In this document: positions 357-11,592 of the stretch, in pieces | Layout: the number at the start of each line of letters is the position of its first letter | Numbering within the stretch: position 1 is the stretch's first letter | Assembly (NCBI RefSeq): GCF_964204645.1 | Contig: NC_134032.1 | Span: 15,860,275-15,924,274 of the forward strand | Origin: Tubulanus polymorphus | Lineage: Eukaryota > Animalia > Nemertea | Length of the DNA: 64,000 bases | Reading direction: 5' to 3' | Notes under the pieces: generated by a model | What the model was told of the DNA's origin: nothing | What the model saw: only the letters and a program-made list of their open reading frames with translations | The model's database searches: none | Program-made: the position numbers and the translations under genes

Positions 357-2605
357 TCGGTATCACACTGCAAATGACATTGAAATGAGAATATTCTATT
401 AAACTGCCATTGTGTCAATTTGTTTATGTGATGACTCAACCATCTTGCATTTATCCCCTCTCCCTCTCCCTACCTCAACTGATCCCCCTCCCCACCTCAA
501 CTGATCCCCCTCCCCACCTCAACTCATCCCCCTCCCCACCTCAACCTCATCCCCCTCCCCACCTCAACTCATCCCCTCAACCAAAACTTCTCATGTATTC
601 TTGTCTTTAATCATCCGCCACATGTCTTCAATCCTATCAATTACAGCCACCTTTTGATTTCTTCTAAACCTAACATAAATAAGTACTAATTATCCTTTAA
701 CCTAACTAAACCTTTACAGTTAAAAGGTGGTTGTTATAGATAGTTATTTTGGACAATAGGCTCAATCAACCAAATTTCACGGGCCCAGAAAATCTGTTAG
801 TTATAACCGATATAAGTGTGGAATTAATCAAATTGTTTTACTTGGGACAAAATTCTATATATTTGTTGAAATCCGACGAATCGTTGTATCTGAGTTTGTA
901 TTTATTTGTATAAATGTTATATATGTATTATTTGTAGTAATCTGTGATGCTGCTAAACCTGTTGGAATAATTCCACCAGATGATGAAATTCTTGTATCAA
1001 TTTGATGTACATCAATAAATATATGTATTATCGTGTTGTTTGTTTATCGCGGGATCCGTGGTGAGTTTCAATCACTGCGACTCCCAGCCGCAGACTCTGA
1101 TTTCAATTAAACACTTTCAAACCACTCTTCCATCGCAAACAAAACCCGTTTCAAGTTTTAGCTTTGGACAGGTTTTAGAACACGATGAAAAGGGTTTGCA
1201 CGTGTTTTCTGTAAGTCCCAACCCTAGGTTATTGCCATCGTTTGTTCCGGTTCCGTGTCCAAACTATCCAATGTCAGATGGACTGGTTCCGGTGTATTGG
1301 TGGCGAACTGCGGGTTCGGACTACGTAGACAACAGATTCCGTTTCCACTTCACGGGTCATCCTCGCTTTCGCAAACCCTTAAGCGAGCGCTGATTGGTCG
1401 GACACCACGTGTCATTTGTTACAAGTGCTGTGATTGGTACTACCGGATTCAGGTCGGTAACGACTCGCGGTGTCATGGGCAACGCCGGCGCTTGCAAAGT
1501 GAGTTCGAATCCTTTGACCGGTGAATGAAAATGCTTCACGGTTTCGGGCCAGGTGGAAACAGGTGTCCGTTGGTTGGTCCTATACGTGAAAACTCCTACT
1601 ATCCAGAATAAAACAGTTAACTATTTTCATCTTAATGTTCTATCATGGGAATAAAACAATGTTACGACACAATGAAAGATTTAGAAATATCGAACACGCA
1701 CTAAAAAACTTCAAACGGTAATTACCGTGTTTATAACAACTGACTGAATGGTATTTAGGAGAAAACTGAATTATTGTCTTTACGTGTCATAGAAATAAAA
1801 CCAACATATATGTTAAACCCTTAATGTAAAACTGAATGTTCGGAGTAATTTAGACTTTTGTTTCCTTGTTTTATTTCGGGTTTTTTATTGTGAGATTGAC
1901 ACGCGACGTTTGATAGTGAAGTCATCGAAATATTGGTTTTTATTTAAAAGTTTTATTCATAGTTTGATTTATCAGTTTATATCAATATCCCGGAACAGAA
2001 ATCAGAGAGATAATTAAGGAAAATTAAACTATCATAAAAAATGCAGTTTTGTTTAGTTCAAAGTTTTGATTATTCATCGTCTTTTAGTTTTATCAGTTTA
2101 TAAATAAATATCCCGCAGCACCAGTGTCAGTGTTTCCCGATGAGCAGATAATTACCCCTATTATACTATAAATCAGAGAGATAATTAAGGAAATTAAACT
2201 ATCATCAAAAATGCAGTTCTTTGATTCAAAGTTTTTATTATTTATCGTCTACTAATTTTATCAAATGTACATAAGGAAGATCCTGTTTATGTGGTTTTTT
2301 GGCTTTATCTATTTGTGTTACACTGAGTGTGATGATGGAGAGACAATTTAATCCTCAATAATTCTCTAAATAGTGATATTTACATGAACAAAGAATGATG
2401 ATAAATGATGATGATGCTGGCGGAGTGACAACAGCGATTCTTATCGTTTCTAGATTGAAACAAGGAAATGAAATTACTATTTAAAGACCAGCTCAGTTTT
2501 TTGATTCATAAAGCTGTTCATATCGGTCTGTGTGAAAAGGCGCAGTTTTTTGGTAGTAGTTCACAGTTCAGTTGTTTAGTATTTATCGCGAGTATCTGTT
2601 TGAAT

Positions 2606-5600
2606 ATGGAGTTGATGATGAAGAGTTTGTTTGTGGTCGCTGTAATTTTATTCGTCGAGAATTCTCAAGGTAAGCGAACAAATAATATTAATATCACTTA
2701 ATACTGATTAAATTTGTTGATTAAGAATTTTAGAGTTAAATTATTGAGATCAGTGCCGTCACATAGGTTAGAACTGTTTGATCAGTGCTGCTGTGCAGGT
2801 GCCGATCTGGGGAACTCTCTAAACTAATGGTCTCAAAAGGTCACTTTATTACCTCACTAAACGGCCAGTATGACGCGTTGTTCCGGGACTCGTTTCAAGG
2901 ACAGTTGTTTATTTAAAAAAAAGGAATAAATTTTCTCAAAACAGCAACTACCTATTGGTAGTATAGCACCGGTCAAACTAGACAGTAGGTTTTAAAACCA
3001 CAATATATAGAATTTAAAAGATTAATTACATATTTAATTAATCAAAATCAAATGATATTTCTATCGCGGGAACTTATCATCAGCACCTAGCGGGAGGAGT
3101 TTATCCTCAGCCTCGAACCCGGGACCTCCATTGTGCCAGGCGATCACGCTAACCACTAGACCATAAAGTTTGATGTAGTTTTTCCGGTCAGTGTCTGAGC
3201 ATTTAGCTGTGGTGCCGACTGATGACTAGTCAGCTGTGGTGACCTGGTGACAAGTCCAGTGACTGGTGACTAGTCCTGGTGATCAATGTGGTGTGGTAAC
3301 TGATGACCAATCCTTTTTTATAGACTGGTATTAACTTCGACCCGAAGGCTAACTAAATTCATAATCAGTTGAGTTAGCCCTCGGGTCTATACTACCGCTT
3401 TATAAGTTCATAGATACGGGTATTTTTCTATACAGTATTGACAGATGACACCGACTCAGGTTGTAGCGGCGAGTGGCCAGGTAGAAAACAGAGCGGAACT
3501 TCTGGCGTCATAACCAGTCCTAACTACCCGGGTAACTATGGCGACAATCTGCGCTGTGAATGGCGGATTGATACACCTCAAAACATGGTAAATATAAAAC
3601 ACAGGAAATTGTGAAATATATTCGCGGTTAGAAAAACTAGAAATATAATCAAAAATGTTTTTGTCAGTAATATTTGGACAAGTGTAGAACGGAACTTGGA
3701 TCCAGCACCAAATCGGCTGCTGAACTGATTAACTATTACATCACGTTATGCATTATCAATAGGGGTAACCCTTAATCATTACTACCAGTTAGAATGTAGT
3801 GAAAATATTTAAGAAATAATAAAACAATCAAATTAATTTTATTTCAGAGTTGCATAGTTCAAAGTTGAATCTGATTTGATCCTAAATTCTACGGGAAACC
3901 CTTAGATAACCACGTGACTGATTCTATTTTTAGCTGTCAAGAATATCGTTTGATCCTATTTTCGAATTGGACCGCAATACGACAAGTGGTTATTGCCACG
4001 ACGATGTATCCATATATAATTACCAAATATCCTGTAAGAATCGAACAATTTAATTTAAAACTCGATGTTAAATGAATAAATGAAGAAATATCAGCGATTT
4101 TCAAATCCAGCTAAAAATCTATCATTGATTTGTGTGTTTATTTTCACAGTATATAATGATGTATATTGCGACAAAACAGCGCCACCTACACGTTACTATT
4201 CCGGTTTTGTATACATCCAGTTTAGATCAGACATGTCTCTTAGCTACAAAGGCTTTAAACTGTTTTGGCGGTATTTCAAAGGTAGCTCATAATGAGAAGT
4301 TTATCATGGATTCAGTAAATTACATATAAAACAATTCAATTCAATATTTATTTGTAGTTGATTCGACATGTAGTAAAACACCTATAATACAGAATGGTAC
4401 ATCAGGCGTCATATCCAGCCCTAACTACCCGAACAACTACTACCACGGACTGGACTGTAGATGGTTAATTCTAGCTCCTGAAAATACGGTAAATATTTGG
4501 TGGTCTATGATGAAAATAATTTTGTCGGGTTTACTGCACAAGTTGGAGCTAAAATCAGTTTTAAGTTAAACCTTGAAATGAACAATTCAATTTCACCGTA
4601 CCACCAAAACATCTTAAGAGATTTAGCGACAGAGGAACTTTATGAATGATACTTTGTTTATGTTATGGAACTAATGCATCATGGGAAACTAATTCGAAAT
4701 TTACTTAAAATCGAATAATCGAACATAAATCGCATAAATCGAACTAGTTAATTTTTCGCTAATTCGCGTTTGTGAAACCGATTTAATCATCGAATTAACT
4801 ATCTCGAATTAACCAAATTTTAAAACGAATTATCAACTAATTCGAGTCCGAAAAAAAATGAAAATTGATCCATATAACGGGTATCACACTCTGTAGACAA
4901 TGCGATTGTTGACATTTGGATAATATTCAATTCTTAATTCATGTATTTTTGCAGATTGTTGAAATATCATTTGACTCGAATTTTCATATAGAGCCCATAC
5001 ATGTCGATTATTGTCTGGACTCCTTGTGGATAATAAGTGCAACCGGTAATCTAAATCTAAACACTCTTCACAACGTGAATGATTTTTATGATTCATTAAG
5101 TTGTATCAGATTTATTTGGCTGTTCCTGATATTAGTGTTCTATTAATCGTGAACAATCAAATTAATTTTATTTCAGAGTTGCAGAGTTCAAAGTTGAATC
5201 TGATTTGATCCAAAATTCTACGTGGAACCCTTAGATAACCACGTGACTAATTCCATTTTTAGGTGTTAAGAATATCGTTTGATCCTATTTTCGAATTGGA
5301 ACGCAAAACGATAAGTGGTCATTGCCGTGACAAAGTATCCATATATACTGACCCAAACTGTAAGAATCGAATAATTTAATTTAAAATGAATAAATGAAGA
5401 AATATCAAATCCAAATTTCAAATCCAGCTAAAAATATGTCATTGATTTGTTTTTGTATTTTTACGGCAGATGTTAATCATGATTGCGGCAATACAGCGCC
5501 ACCTACACGTAACTATTCCGGTGGTGTAACCATCAAGTTTGTAACCATCAAGTCAGACAACTCTGGTATCTACAAAGGGTTTAGACTTTATTGGCAGTTA

Positions 5601-8600
5601 TTGAAAGGTAGGTCATAATGAGAAGTTTATCATAGAATCAGTAAATTACATATAAAACAATTCAATTCAATATTTATTTGTAGTTGATTCATGTAGTAAA
5701 ACACCTATAATACAGAATGGTACATCAGGCGTCATAACCAGCCCTAACTACCCGGGCAAATACTACAACAACCTGGACTGCAGATGGTTGATTGATACTC
5801 CTGAAAACAGGGTAAATATATAACGAATTGTGAAATGTTGGTCTTAGCAAAAAATGTGGGGTTCAATGGGATTAGAATCAGTTTTAACTTTATTCCGGGG
5901 TTTAGTTCAACTGATTACTCTGGGTTAAAGTTAAATTGTTCACTTTTGATTAATATCTAACTCTGAATTCATATATTTTTTGCAGATGGTTGAAATATCA
6001 TTTAACTCGAATTTTCATATACAACCCAGAACTAGCGGTGGTTGCCATGACGCGTTGACGATAAAAAGTGAAACCGGTAAAAATCTAAACACTCTTCATA
6101 ACGTGAATGATTTTTATGGTTCGTAAAGTTTCATCAGATTTATTTCTACATCGGGGAGTATTGAATATTGCGGGTGGCTGCTTCTGATAGATTTGTGTTT
6201 TCAAATCCAGCCAAAAATATATCATTGTTTTGTTTTATTTTTACAGTAGAAAATGGTGATGTATATTGCGGCAGTACAGCGCCACCTACACGTAACTATT
6301 CCGGTGGTGTAACCATCAAGTTTACATCAGACAACTCTGGTATCTACAAAGGGTTTAAACTGTTCTGGCGGTATTTGAAAGGTAGCTGAGCATAATGAGA
6401 AGTTGATCATGGAATCAGTAAATCACATATAAAACAATTCAATTCAATATTTATTTGTAGTTGATTCATGTAGTAAAACACCTATAATACAGAATGGTAC
6501 ATCAGGTGTCATATCCAGCCCTAACCATCCGGGCAACTACTACCGCAGGCTGGACTGTAGATGGTTAATCCAAACACCTGAAAACAGGGTAAATATTTGG
6601 TCTATGAGAAAAATGATGTCGGGTTTACTGAACTTGTAGGAGCTCAACGGGGGTTTCAGTTTTAACTTTAACCCGAGGTTTAGTTTCGAACTGATAACTA
6701 AACTGATTAAAGTTAAAACTGATCCATACAAACGGGTCCTGCACTCTGCAAACAATACGACGGTTCACTTTGAATTATAATCAACAATTATTAATCTTAA
6801 TTCTTATATTTTTACAGATTGTTGAAATATCATTTGACTCGAATTTCAGTATGGGGGCCAAAACTGGCGATAATTGCCATGACGCGTTGACGATAAAAAG
6901 TGGAACCGGTAAAAATCTAAACACTATTCACAACGTGAATGATTTTATGATTCATAAAATTTTATCAGATTTCTTTGTCTGCTCCTGATGTTTATTTTCA
7001 AATCCAGCTAGAAAATATATCATTGATTTGTGTGTTTATTCTTACAGTGAATGTATATTGTGGCAATACAGCGCCACCTACACGTAACTATACCGGTCGT
7101 GTAATCATCCGGTTTACATCAGGCAGCTATGATAGCTACAAAGGGTTTAGACTTTTTTGGCGGTTTTTGAAAGGTAGGTCATTAGTGAGAAGTTGATCAT
7201 GGAATCAGTAAATCACATATAAAACAATTCAATTCAATATTTATTTGTAGTTGATTCATGTAGTAAAACACCTATAATACAGAATGGTAGATCAGGCGTC
7301 ATATCCAGCCCTAACTACCCGAACAAGTACTACCGCGGACTGGACTGTAGATGGTTAATCCAAACACCTGAAAACACGGTAAATATTTGGTCTATGAGAA
7401 AAATGATGTCGGATTTTCTGCACTACTAGGAAATCAATGGGACTAAATTCAGTTTAACTTAAACATTATTCATATATTAACTTTAACCCGAGGTTTAGTT
7501 TTGAACTGATAACTCTGGATTAAAGTTAAAACTAATCTATATAAACGGGTCCTACATTCTGCAAACAATACGACGGTTCACTTTGAATTATAATCAACAA
7601 TTATTAATCTTAATTCTTATATTTTTACAGATTGTTGAAATATCATTTGACTCGAACTTCAGTATGGGGGCCAAAACTGGTGATAGTTGCTATGACGCGT
7701 TGACGATAAAAAGTGGAACCGGTAAAAATCTAAACACTCTTCAAAACGTGAATGATTTTATGATTCATAAAGTTTTATTAGATTTATTTGTCTGCTCCTG
7801 ATGTTTATTTTCAAATCCAGCTAGAAAATATATCATTGATTTGTGTGTTTATTTTTATAGCAGAAAATGGTGATGTATATTGCGGCAATACAGCGCCACC
7901 TACACGTGTATATTCCGGTGAGGTAGTCATCCGGTTTACATCAGACATGTCTGGTAGCTACAAAGGGTTTAAACTCTGTTGGAAATTTGTGAAAGGTAGC
8001 TGAGCATAACGAGAAGTTTATCATGGAATCAGTAAATCACATATAAAACAATTCAATTCAATATTTATTTGTAGTTGATTCATGTAGTAAAACACCTATA
8101 ACACAGAATGGTAGATCAGGCGTCATAACCAGCCCTAACTACCCGAACAGCTATAATGACAATATCGACTGTAGCTGGTTAATCCAAGCACCTGAAAACA
8201 GGGTAAATATATAAATAATTGTTAGGAAAAAATGAATTCGTCAGATTTTGAGCACGAGGTTCATTGGGGTTATAATCAGTTTTAACTTTATTCCGGGGTT
8301 TAGTTCAACTGATAACTCCGGGTTAAAGTTAAAACTGATCTACTGAAACGGGTCCTACATTCTGCTGACAATACAATTGCTCACTTTTAAATTACATTTG
8401 ATTTGGGAAGTAAAGTGGTTGTGCTGTATATCCGCAATTCACTTTCTTTTCTCTGGTTGAATCAAGTTATTACTGAAATAGCATTCGAATAGCCATTTTA
8501 TTTTTAAAAATTGTGTCGTTCAGCTATCCTGTTGCAAGTTTCGCAGTTGAAGTTTACTGGTGCCATCTGATTTCTCAGTATCTCAAATCTATTTTTGCAG

Positions 8601-11027
8601 ATGGTTGAAATATCGTTTGACTCGAAGTTTCATATACAGACAAGTAAAGGTCGTTGCTGGGACGCGTTGACGATAAAAAGTGAAACCGGTAAAAATCTTA
8701 ACACTCTTCATAACGTGAATTATTTTTATGGTTCGTAAAGTTTTATCATTATTCATTTCTTCACCAGGGAGTAATCAATATTGCGGGTCGACTGCTCCAG
8801 ATAATCGATCCCACACTGGAAATATTACAATACAGTTTACATCAGACAACTCGGGAAGCGATGCTGGGTTTAAACTTCTATGGCGGATTAAAGGTAGCTA
8901 TACGATGAAAATAGTAAAATTTAAATATGTAAACTTAAGTCTATAATTTGAACCTGTTTGATATAGATGAGTTTCATATTCTGTATTTCAGACAAAGATA
9001 CAGATAGAATCAGTTATTTGACAGTTGTTTTCGGGATTGGTTTTCTGATTATAGTAATAGTGGCTGCTATAGCTATCGCCGTGTTGATCAGACAGCGGAG
9101 GAACGTGAGAAACAGAAATACAGGTTTGTTATTTATCATTTTACTTTAAACGGGGTTGAGTGGAAGCGTGTTTGGGGTATTTACGTCAAATTAGAAATGA
9201 TAACAATGAAACTGAGTCCTCCAGAATATAATCTGACTTGATTTCGGGAACAGGAAGTTCTTTGAATAAAAATAAATACATGTAATATTTCATCTAACAT
9301 TCTATTATTGTTTATAGGTAACAACACGACCGATCCAGGGGCAATGTACTATCAGGTTCGTTAATATAGATACATTAACATTGGTTTTTAAATTTTATTT
9401 TATTTGTGAATATTTTGTAAATTGTTTAACCGATTTATTTTTAGCCTTCGTCTTCTGGAGTTGGTGGTAGGATCTACACAACACAGGACGGTATCTACGA
9501 AGACATAGATGACGGTGAAATCTACGATGATGTAGATATTGTAGATGTCGTTGTCGCAGGTGTCAGGAACGCTACAGAGAATGACGTAGATGTCAGGAAC
9601 GCTACAGATGATGACGTAGATGTAAGGAACGCTACAGATGATGACGTAGATGTAAGGAACGCTACAGATGATGACGTTGATGTAAGGAACGCTACAGATG
9701 ATGACGTAGATGCATGGAACTCTACAGATGATGACGTAGATGCATGGAACTCTACAGATGATGACGTAGATGTATGGAACTCTACAGATGATGACGTAGA
9801 TGACAACCTTGTCGCAGATGTCAGAAACCCTCCAGAAGATGACTACGTTGGCCCAGATGTCATGAACCCTCCAGAAGATACCTACATTGTCGCAGGTGTC
9901 CGGAACCCTCCAGAAGATGACTACGTTGGCCCAGATGTCATGAACCCTCCAGAAGATACCTACATTGTCACAGGTGTCAGGAATCCTCCAGAAGATGATT
10001 ATGTCGTTGTCGCGGGTGTCAGGAACACTCCTGAAGATACCTACATTGTTCCAGATGCAAGAAACTCTTCAGAAGATGACTACGTCGTTGTCCCAAATAT
10101 CAGGAACACTCCAGAAGATACCTACATTGTCGCAGGTGTCCGGAACCCTCCAGAAGATACCTACATTGTTGCACTTAAGGTTTGTCAATATAAATAATAC
10201 ATTTCTATTGTTTTCAATTTTTTTATTTGCGAATATATTATTAGGCCTAATTGTTTACCGATTTATTTTCAGCCAACAGCTACTTCAGCTGACGACAGGA
10301 TCTCTCCAGAAGATGACTACGTTGGCCCAGATGTTAGGTACTCTACAGAAGATACCTACGTTGTCGCAGGTGTCAGGAATCCCCCTGAAGATACCTACAT
10401 TGTTCCAGATGCAAGAAACTGTACAGAAGATGACTACGTCGTTGTCGCAGGTGTCAGGAATCCTCCAGAAGATGACTACTTCGTTGTCGCAGGTGTCAGG
10501 AACACTCCTGAAGATACCTACATTGTTCCAGATGCAAGAAACTCTTCAGAAGATGATTACGTCGTTGTCGCAGGTGTCAGAAACCCCCCAGAAGATACCT
10601 ATGTTGTCCCAGATATCAGAAACACTCCAGAAGATACCTACATTGTTCCAGATGTCAGGAACCCTCCAGAAGATACCTACGTTGTTGCAGATGGCATAAG
10701 ACCACAATTAGGTTAGTAGATGCGTAGGGCACGACACAAAAATAATGTAGTACCAAAAGAGAAAGTGAGGTCCCCCATAAACATTGCCGGTTACATGTAT
10801 GTAAGCCATGGGTTCAGAGAGACAGGTTGATGGTGTGGGTCGGACCCAACCTTTCAAAAGTTTTCAGTATAGGGAAAAGTAAGGTTGGGTTTCAGGGGCG
10901 GATACTAACCTAGGTTGTCATAAGCAACCTTTCCTGGATTTACGCGCTTATATTATGAACTCAACGCTCGAATTTATTTCTTATCTTTTCTTTATGATAT
11001 ATAGATGATAATGGAACAATGGACTAA
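2606..11027 (+). CDS. Type I membrane receptor: signal peptide, 6 CUB domains, TM, Tyr-repeat cytoplasmic tail (~1189 aa, 24 exons)
   Basis: GT-AG exons, all phase-compatible: 2606-2669 (MELMMKSLFVVAVILFVENSQ signal). CUB1 3436-3587, 3934-4033, 4150-4281. CUB2 4358-4488, 4955-5045 (or 5263-5359), 5470-5607. CUB3 5684-5811, 5986-6076, 6247-6381. CUB4 6461-6588, 6818-6908, 7048-7173. CUB5 7251-7378, 7631-7721, 7861-7995. CUB6 8075-8202, 8601-8688, 8768-8893. TM 8992-9123, then 9318-9355, 9445-10179, 10273-10711, 11005-11027 (TAA). CUB signatures SGVITSPNYP..Y..N..C.W.I, YCG, F.SD.S..YKGF. Alternative end: read-through to TAG at 10714-10716. Confidence 0.9.
3061..3165 (-). mobile_element. tRNA-derived SINE head in intron 1 of the CUB gene
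   Basis: Minus strand has TGGTCTAGTGG (A box) and GGTTCGAG (B box) at tRNA spacing, with no complete cloverleaf. Confidence 0.6.
5263..5359 (+). CDS. Alternative middle exon of CUB2 (VLRISFDPIFELERKTISGHCRDKVSIYTDPN)
   Basis: tttttag acceptor, gtaaga donor, open frame, phase 0 to 1 like 4955-5045; paralogous to CUB1 exon 3934-4033. Confidence 0.65.
8992..9123 (+). CDS. Transmembrane exon of the CUB receptor
   Basis: YLTVVFGIGFLIIVIVAAIAIAVLI followed by basic stop-transfer RQRRNVRNR; phase 1-1. Confidence 0.9.
9445..10711 (+). CDS. Cytoplasmic tail exons: YEDI/YDDV motifs, 8 acidic 10-aa repeats, 19 ED[D/T]Y repeats (9445-10179, 10273-10711)
   Basis: Frame open from 9445 (contains ORF 9862-10197); aag|gtttgt donor at 10179; ttttcag acceptor at 10272. 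Confidence 0.85.
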
Positions 11028-11592
11028 GCTCAGATGTCAGGAATGCTAAAGAAGATGACTACACTGTTACAGAAACTCTCTATAAGATGACGACTTTGTC
11101 ACAGATATCAGAAACTCTTCAGAAGATAACTACATTGTAGTAGAGGTCAGGAATCTACAGTGGCTGTTGTGTTGTATAAATGTAACTTTATGAAATGTAA
11201 TGAATTTCAAGAACTCTGATATAAACGAAAATATAGTTTGAATTTTGAAATTCCTCGACTGCCAGAGCACCATATAGTGTGTATATATCTATTTTCACAG
11301 TATTTTCAAGTATTTGTATATTGTTATATTGTATAAGCAAAGACTAACAAAATGAAAAAGAATCATATTTACTTGACCTCAGAATTTGAATATAACAATA
11401 ACAGTCGTTTTGTTCGATATATATTTGTGTCGTTTAGGAGCCAGTTGTTCAAACATTGTTTTAGAATTAACGGGTCGACAATAATAGTAACAATTCAATT
11501 TCAATTGTCACTTAATGAACTGTCCACCGCTAAACTTTGACCATGGACTCCAGAATCCATTGTTTAATCAATGTTTGGGCAATGGGTCACTG

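Follow-up and report, generated by a model that had tools for sequence, protein, structure and literature searches.

Organization of the locus and of its product

The window analyzed here is a stretch of 64,000 nucleotides (nt) from the nemertean Tubulanus polymorphus (contig C8:15860275-15924274 of a 268-Mb assembly). Its forward strand carries an intact gene of 24 exons at positions 2606-11027, as established by three-frame translation of 2400-11200 and by reading of the exon borders. All borders are AG/GT, the phases are consistent, and the gene model contains a single stop codon, at 11025-11027. The encoded protein displays a signal peptide, six CUB domains, one transmembrane (TM) helix, and a tail of 422-423 amino acids (aa) harboring 25 tyrosines, with no catalytic, TIR, or death domain in the Pfam scan. 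An original prediction, made from the letters alone, had proposed this frame and this architecture, and both were recovered when the gene was rebuilt from the sequence. Judged by its sequence, the gene belongs to a Tubulanus-restricted family of CUB / tyrosine-repeat receptors, the members of which have in common a signal peptide, a CUB array, a TM helix, a juxtamembrane tyrosine core, and a tail of ED[DT]Y repeats.

Each CUB domain is encoded by three exons, termed A (phase 1 to 0), B (0 to 1), and C (1 to 1). The features of the gene are given below in window coordinates; joints are those read in contigs of one public run (run X2).

2606..2669, + strand: exon 1, start codon and signal peptide (21 aa + 1 nt); hydrophobic N-terminus, donor GTAAGC
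3436..4281, + strand: CUB1, exons 3436-3587, 3934-4033, and 4150-4281; first exon matches Pfam CUB at E 8e-7
4358..5607, + strand: CUB2, chimeric, exons 4358-4488, 5263-5359 (B2b), and 5470-5607; joint 5359>5470
4955..5045, + strand: B2a, spare middle exon of CUB2; splice sites intact, same phase as B2b
5684..6381, + strand: CUB3, exons 5684-5811, 5986-6076, and 6247-6381; joints 5811>5986 and 6076>6247
6461..7173, + strand: CUB4, exons 6461-6588, 6818-6908, and 7048-7173; joint 6908>7048, model as in protein P0063 (see below)
7251..7995, + strand: CUB5, exons 7251-7378, 7631-7721, and 7861-7995; joints 7378>7631 and 7721>7861
8075..8893, + strand: CUB6, membrane-proximal, exons 8075-8202, 8601-8688, and 8768-8893; joint 8688>8768
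8992..9123, + strand: stalk, TM helix, and basic stop-transfer run; Kyte-Doolittle peak 3.23, joint 9123>9318
9318..9355, + strand: tail exon T1, 38 nt, 13 codons, holding the YYQ tyrosines; joints on both sides
9445..10179, + strand: tail exon T2, tyrosine core with RIYTTQ, IYEDI, and IYDDV, eight D-rich repeats, and the first nine ED[DT]Y units; joint 10179>10273
10273..10711, + strand: tail exon T3, a further ten ED[DT]Y units; 88-95% identical in the closest paralogues
11005..11027, + strand: terminal exon T4, last 7 aa and stop, 23 nt; present in all RefSeq isoforms

The 21 residues encoded by exon 1 are identical in four paralogues and form the N-terminus of RefSeq isoforms X1-X4. CUB1, with phases 1>0>1>1, clusters with the first CUBs of the paralogues in a domain tree, and exons A and C of CUB3 each match Pfam CUB. 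Exon T1 is 92-100% identical among paralogues.

B2a and B2b both run from phase 0 to phase 1; using both would therefore break the frame, and only one is usable. The product is 1189 aa long with B2a and 1191 aa long with B2b. The B2a chain yields exactly the 1189-aa model of the original prediction, but the middle exon of CUB2 is B2b in run X2 and in five of five RefSeq isoforms, none of which uses B2a. The run contigs were compared over 6000 bases, a stretch outside which B2a is located. B2a would be a relic or else a mutually exclusive exon of rare use. CUB2 clusters with the "type 1" domains in the tree, as expected if a deletion had fused two adjacent CUBs and left B2a over.

Right after the stop codon, at 11012-11190, decayed tail units (e.g., EDDY, EDNY) are found in two other frames. 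Hence, the tail was formerly longer, and what is now the last exon resembles a leftover of a repeat exon after a frameshift. Within the intron between exons A and B of CUB6, the summed contig depth at 8430-8629 reaches 5345 in a second public run (run X1), vs. about 50-650 elsewhere; this patch is probably a high-copy repeat or a transposon fragment.

Annotation, transcripts, and isoforms

The gene is already annotated in RefSeq as T. polymorphus "cubilin-like", with isoforms X1-X5 (XP_074656264-268). Isoform X3 (P0063; XP_074656266) coincides with the B2b model over all its 1191 residues, and the 23-nt last exon ends all five isoforms. A look-up of contigs encoding P0063 found none on record.

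Exact GT..AG joints are present at 11 predicted borders in the contigs of run X2, those named being B2b>C2, A3>B3, B3>C3, B4>C4, A5>B5, B5>C5, B6>C6, TM>T1, T1>T2, and T2>T3. The spliced contigs have a depth well above the intron background. In run X1, which is from another sample of the same study, exons and introns are covered alike and these joints are absent. As one run is unspliced and the other spliced, the spliced forms are taken as RNA and not as a retrocopy. Splicing of the CUB, TM, and tail exons, on which the original prediction depended, is thus documented at 11 joints, including the whole path TM-T1-T2-T3, but C6>TM and T3>T4 are not seen among the run X2 joints listed. Two contigs are colinear with the genome beyond 10711, and a form left unspliced past this position would terminate at 10714-10716. 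T4 was kept in the model because its peptide is conserved in paralogues, and it is the probable true last exon.

Following exon B of CUB3, the first 42 nt of the intron (6077-6118) continue the reading frame up to a second GT donor. This donor serves in RefSeq isoforms X1, X2, and X5, the long form adding 14 aa to a CUB3 loop; no contig joint corresponds to it among those listed. A matching in-frame stretch with a GT donor follows exon B of CUB6 (8689-8730), and in CUB4 and CUB5 the matching stretch is conserved, with no GT donor seen there. Isoform X5 starts with 3 aa in place of the signal-peptide exon and, if real, would have no signal peptide.

Two further joints were dismissed. Joint 6381>8075, which would skip CUB4 and CUB5, has a shorter side of 24 nt, and exons A4, A5, and A6 all start with the same 24 nt; it was not retained as an isoform. 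Joint 6071>6150 (AA..AC) was considered an artefact. Another joint goes back 773 positions (6191 to 5419, six letters between) in both run X1, which is DNA-like, and run X2. It could reflect a haplotype with one extra CUB unit or a k-mer artefact between repeat units (~30 nt on the shorter side).

The ectodomain

The Pfam scan of P0063 returns six CUB stretches (PF00431) with an E-value of 1.2e-96 and 318.9 bits, for a cut-off of 21.4. Only CUB families are found, and EGF, LCCL, kinase, phosphatase, TIR, and death domains are absent from the scan. Single CUB exons match Pfam CUB at E about 1e-6. The cysteines (four), glycines, tryptophans, and phenylalanines that define the CUB fold are invariant across 28 family domains. 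The AlphaFold model of the chimeric CUB2 has a predicted local distance difference test (pLDDT) value of 86, and it superimposes on C1r CUB2 with a template-modelling (TM) score of 0.83 and a root-mean-square deviation of 1.5. The top structural matches of this model are C1r CUB2, neuropilin a1/a2, and MASP CUB2, with TM scores of about 0.8.

CUB6 shows a partial match to PF23665 (CDCP1_CUB_6; 45.7 bits, profile positions 11-60 of 115), beneath a stronger generic CUB match. PF23668, another CDCP1-type CUB model, stays below its cut-off, also beneath the generic CUB match. The ectodomain is followed by a single hydrophobic segment (residues 749-769) and a basic run, which places the tail in the cytoplasm.

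The cytoplasmic tail

The tail of 422-423 residues contains 104 Asp and Glu, and 30 Lys and Arg, for a net charge of about -74. No credible Pfam match is found for the tail exons. The tail starts with a core carrying YYQP, RIYTTQ, IYEDI, and IYDDV. The core is followed by eight tyrosine-free, D-rich units of 10 aa and then by 19 tyrosine units, 13-14 aa in length, whose consensus is R-N-P-P-E-D-[D/T]-Y-[I/V]-V. Hence, 19 of the 25 tail tyrosines sit in tandem repeats. At the DNA level, Tandem Repeats Finder identifies in T2 arrays of period 30 (8.1 copies) and of period 39.

A motif scan reveals nine YxxP, twelve Y[IVL]x[VILP], and two Y[ED][ED][IVL] motifs. Tyrosine is retained in 114 of 115 repeat units from eight family proteins, a count in which the tyrosine alone is informative since the ED pair was fixed by the search pattern. 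Conservation of valine or isoleucine at +1 and +2, and of the R-N pair at -4/-3, is nearly as strong as that of the tyrosine. All tail segments fall on the disordered side of the charge-hydropathy plot, and the tail is probably disordered.

A receptor family in Tubulanus

Tail exon T2 has 26 matching places in the genome, and those of the CUB exons are far more numerous. The gene is colinear, exon by exon, with its paralogue loci, which are listed here with this gene by CUB number.

P0070, C8 15.10 Mb: 8 CUBs
P0071, C8 16.28 Mb: 7 CUBs
This gene, C8 15.86 Mb: 6 CUBs
P0072, C8 15.57 Mb: 5 CUBs
P0062, C8 14.87 Mb: 3 CUBs, 609-aa tail with 39 tyrosines
P0003, C8 11.92 Mb: 2 CUBs

Identity to P0070, P0071, P0072, and P0062 amounts to 100% in the signal peptide, 92-100% in the core, 81-97% in the repeats, and 68-78% in the ectodomain. 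In P0062 (C8:14873000-14882000) the juxtamembrane core is present three times, which indicates that the whole core-plus-repeat module can duplicate.

Three tandem loci on chromosome C2 (4372240-4392607) carry a related core and ED[DT]Y repeats on ectodomains made of discoidin-like and FN3 domains. Some of their products are labelled "receptor-type tyrosine-protein phosphatase delta-like" or "Lar-like" in RefSeq, and the Pfam scan finds no phosphatase domain in them. The original prediction had called the receptor an orphan. This does not hold: its chromosome carries at least six paralogues of the CUB type, another chromosome has at least three discoidin/FN3 receptor loci with the shared tail, and the gene was already in RefSeq.

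The other T2 matches inspected are unrelated low-complexity tandem repeats. The protein P0033 (476 aa) has EEDDY-type repeats and no demonstrable relationship to the tail, and it was set aside. Outside the species, a search of T2 against 1.84 billion cluster representatives retrieved no tail homologue, the T. polymorphus sequences forming five clusters. Tail matches from the ESM Atlas (SCIMP, A36R, and MUC1 tails) scored 0.77-0.82, which is the chance level, and are leads only; A36R and the adaptor SCIMP scored 0.78-0.79. A full-length search with P0063 outside the species gave generic CUB arrays with 22-33% identity, restricted to the ectodomain, cubilins being the best. The original prediction had recognized no named family in the architecture, and these searches gave neither such a family nor a one-to-one orthologue of known function that has it.

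A further set of genes was encountered at about 2.27-5.04 Mb of C9, and also on C22, C12, and C6. There, the first CUB exon finds the same weak match (E about 2e-3, 42% identity) in each of more than 80 open frames, which are about 410-430 aa long and look like a very large family of tandem genes.

Evolution of the ectodomain and tail

The CUB array is the variable part of the family members, in domain number as well as in sequence. Paralogues with 2, 3, 5, 6, 7, and 8 CUBs document diversification by domain duplication, as had been anticipated, and by domain loss. Compared with the two closest paralogues, the ratio of nonsynonymous to synonymous substitution rates (dN/dS, or omega; Nei-Gojobori) is 0.93-1.00 in the CUB exons (about 700 codons), vs. 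0.27-0.32 in the TM helix and tail. Between CUB pairs within the gene it ranges from 0.34 to 1.16. The mean omega of about 1 is read as missing constraint on much of the CUB surface, not as positive selection. As the fold-defining residues are invariant at this mean value, some CUB sites probably have an omega above 1.

The dS of 0.16-0.22 among CUB2a, CUB3, CUB4, and CUB5 makes "recently duplicated", as these domains had been described, a fair term. Positional orthology is kept by the first and last CUBs in the tree of 31 domains, whereas the middle ones mix between-gene and within-gene duplicates. CUB6 forms a clade with the last CUBs of all paralogues (support 99/99). The inter-domain introns of CUB3-6 are 95% identical, vs. 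87, 84, and 75% for exons A, B, and C, respectively.

Such youth raises the question of a decaying or non-functional duplicate, the frame of which would be open by accident after a recent duplication. Intron identity to paralogues reaches 99%, the CUB exons evolve with a dN/dS of about 1, and the apparently relic exon B2a and the out-of-frame repeats after the stop are signs of decay. Yet the 24 exons form an unbroken frame and every splice site is present, the spliced contigs stand well above the intron background in depth, the CUB-fold residues are invariant in 28 domains, and the tail has a dN/dS of about 0.3; decay is thus a highly improbable explanation.

Comparison with known systems

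DCBLD1 and DCBLD2 possess 7-8 intracellular YxxP motifs that are phosphorylated by Fyn and Abl and bind the SH2 domain of CRKL (PMC6029619). Like them, the Tubulanus protein is a type I protein whose ectodomain contains CUB and whose tail is rich in tyrosine, and it lacks an enzyme domain. The nine YxxP of its tail compare with their 7-8 at the motif level only, and its same-tail relatives on chromosome C2 carry a discoidin-like domain, as the DCBLDs do. In contrast, the gene itself encodes neither an LCCL nor a discoidin domain, and it carries six CUBs where DCBLD1/2 carry one. The tyrosines of its tail belong to a young tandem array of 19 near-identical units, whereas those of DCBLD1/2 are dispersed conserved sites, and no homology between the tail sequences is detected.

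CDCP1 (Trask/gp140) has a non-catalytic tail that is a Src-family kinase substrate and docking site (PMC4395315). The Tubulanus protein resembles it by its CUB-only ectodomain, single TM helix, and non-catalytic tail. However, the CDCP1-specific CUB match covers just 50 residues and is far weaker than the generic one, and no tail similarity is found, nor a homologous tail binding Src and PKC-delta. The CDCP1 tail is about 150 aa long, with five tyrosines and no known repeats. CDCP1 was the comparison chosen in the original prediction, which overlooked DCBLD1/2, the nearest known analogue.

Cubilin shares tandem canonical CUB domains with the protein. It comprises 8 EGF repeats and 27 CUBs, is not known to have a TM helix or a cytoplasmic tail, and is a peripheral protein anchored via amnionless. 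The Tubulanus protein, in contrast, lacks EGF repeats and possesses its own TM helix and a 423-aa tail; for these reasons it is not a cubilin, and the "cubilin-like" label is a best-hit artefact.

The p130Cas substrate domain, the CagA EPIYA region, and vaccinia A36R carry closely spaced tyrosine motifs in disordered segments and form multivalent, processively phosphorylated SH2 platforms. Such proteins are cytosolic or injected, or are short TM adaptors. Unlike the tail described here, they come without a large CUB ectodomain, and their sequences are unrelated to it. The tail also differs from those of receptors with immunoreceptor tyrosine-based inhibition or activation motifs (ITIM, ITAM), as it contains zero canonical [SIVL]xYxx[IVL] or Yxx[LI]x6-8Yxx[LI] matches. 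The core holds a single ITAM-like pair, YEDI-x5-YDDV, with a short spacing and a Val, and a second loose match lies within the repeat array. What is new in the system is the tyrosine array built of tandem repeats, together with its presence on ectodomains of two types.

Proposed function

The protein may be a type I scaffolding receptor devoid of enzyme domain, acting like DCBLD1/2 and CDCP1 while belonging to neither family, a proposal to which we give an even chance. Ligand binding or clustering of the CUB array would recruit non-receptor tyrosine kinases to the tail. Src, Syk, and Abl kinases prefer acidic residues N-terminal of the tyrosine; since all three types favor such residues, they are candidate tail kinases. 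A kinase docked at a core site such as pYEDI could then phosphorylate the repeat array processively, and the phosphorylated array would provide a multivalent platform for SH2 proteins. YxxP motifs are Crk/Abl/Nck-type sites, and Y[IVL]x[VILP] motifs are SHP2/PLC-gamma-type sites. The genome contains at least 30 loci coding for SH2 domains. For the phosphorylation of the tail, its kinases, and its SH2 readers, we infer the scheme from known motif preferences and from the DCBLD and CDCP1 precedents.

Several observations weigh against this scaffolding function. The scan of the tail found no canonical ITIM or ITAM, no immunoreceptor tyrosine-based switch motif (ITSM), and no NPxY, YxN (Grb2), YxxM (p85), or PxxP. 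The type of run X2 is not on record, and it is taken as RNA solely from its spliced contigs. The constancy of the tail is partly a matter of youth or gene conversion, since the paralogue introns around it are 94-99% identical and its dS is 0.06-0.07. Lastly, the repeats come out as weak beta strands (pLDDT 50-62) in an AlphaFold model built from the single sequence, which leaves room for a folded repeat.

The latter model bears on the idea of an acidic repeat tail with a structural or ion-binding role, such as a beta-rich solenoid, a low-affinity cation buffer, or a cytoskeletal spacer, in which tyrosine and Val/Ile are kept for packing. Regular strands cover almost all repeat units, the V/I and R-N positions are conserved almost like the tyrosine, Asp and Glu make up 104 of 423 residues, and an array of eight D-rich units has no tyrosine at all. 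However, the confidence of the model is low (mean pLDDT 52, predicted TM score 0.44, the core being disordered), for which reason it was left out of the fold search, and such strands are a common artefact of tandem repeats. The charge-hydropathy plot indicates disorder for every tail segment, and the net charge of about -74 speaks against autonomous folding. A structural role of this kind is therefore rather improbable.

The motif content also bears on an endocytic or scavenger receptor, in which the CUBs would capture cargo as those of cubilin do, and the tail tyrosines and acidic clusters would be sorting signals (YxxPhi/AP-2, PACS-type adaptors). Seven YxxPhi matches (YEDI, YDDV, four YVVV, and YFVV), a very acidic tail, and an ectodomain whose best outside matches are cubilin-type CUB arrays fit this function. 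One or two sorting signals would suffice, however, and 19 conserved ED[DT]Y units, 12 of which do not fit YxxPhi, are hard to account for; besides, NPxY is missing from the tail, and the protein lacks the EGF repeats of cubilin and has its own TM helix. We regard the endocytic function as unlikely.

To return to the scaffolding receptor, a core-plus-repeat tail mounted on an unrelated discoidin-like and FN3 ectodomain is what is expected of a portable signalling cassette. It is conceivable, although doubtful, that Tubulanus made a portable phosphotyrosine cassette, used on at least two ectodomain types, and that the subterminal cluster of CUB genes, with ectodomains diverging at least as fast as introns, is an undescribed nemertean system of self/non-self (immune or allorecognition-type) receptors. 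A literature search retrieved no paper connecting nemerteans, CUB domains, and immunity.

Significance

To our knowledge, the receptor biology of nemerteans is almost undescribed. The analysis corrects three public labels, namely "cubilin-like", "receptor-type tyrosine-protein phosphatase delta-like", and "Lar-like". Provided that the tail truly is a phosphotyrosine platform, the family would illustrate how a lineage makes a short tandem repeat into a new signalling cassette and shuffles it between ectodomains. It would then be an invertebrate counterpart to the poorly understood, kinase-less scaffolding class of DCBLD and CDCP1, and its 19 near-identical sites would offer a natural array for studying multivalent SH2 recruitment. 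With its fast-changing CUB exons set against a constant tail, the family is a candidate recognition system.

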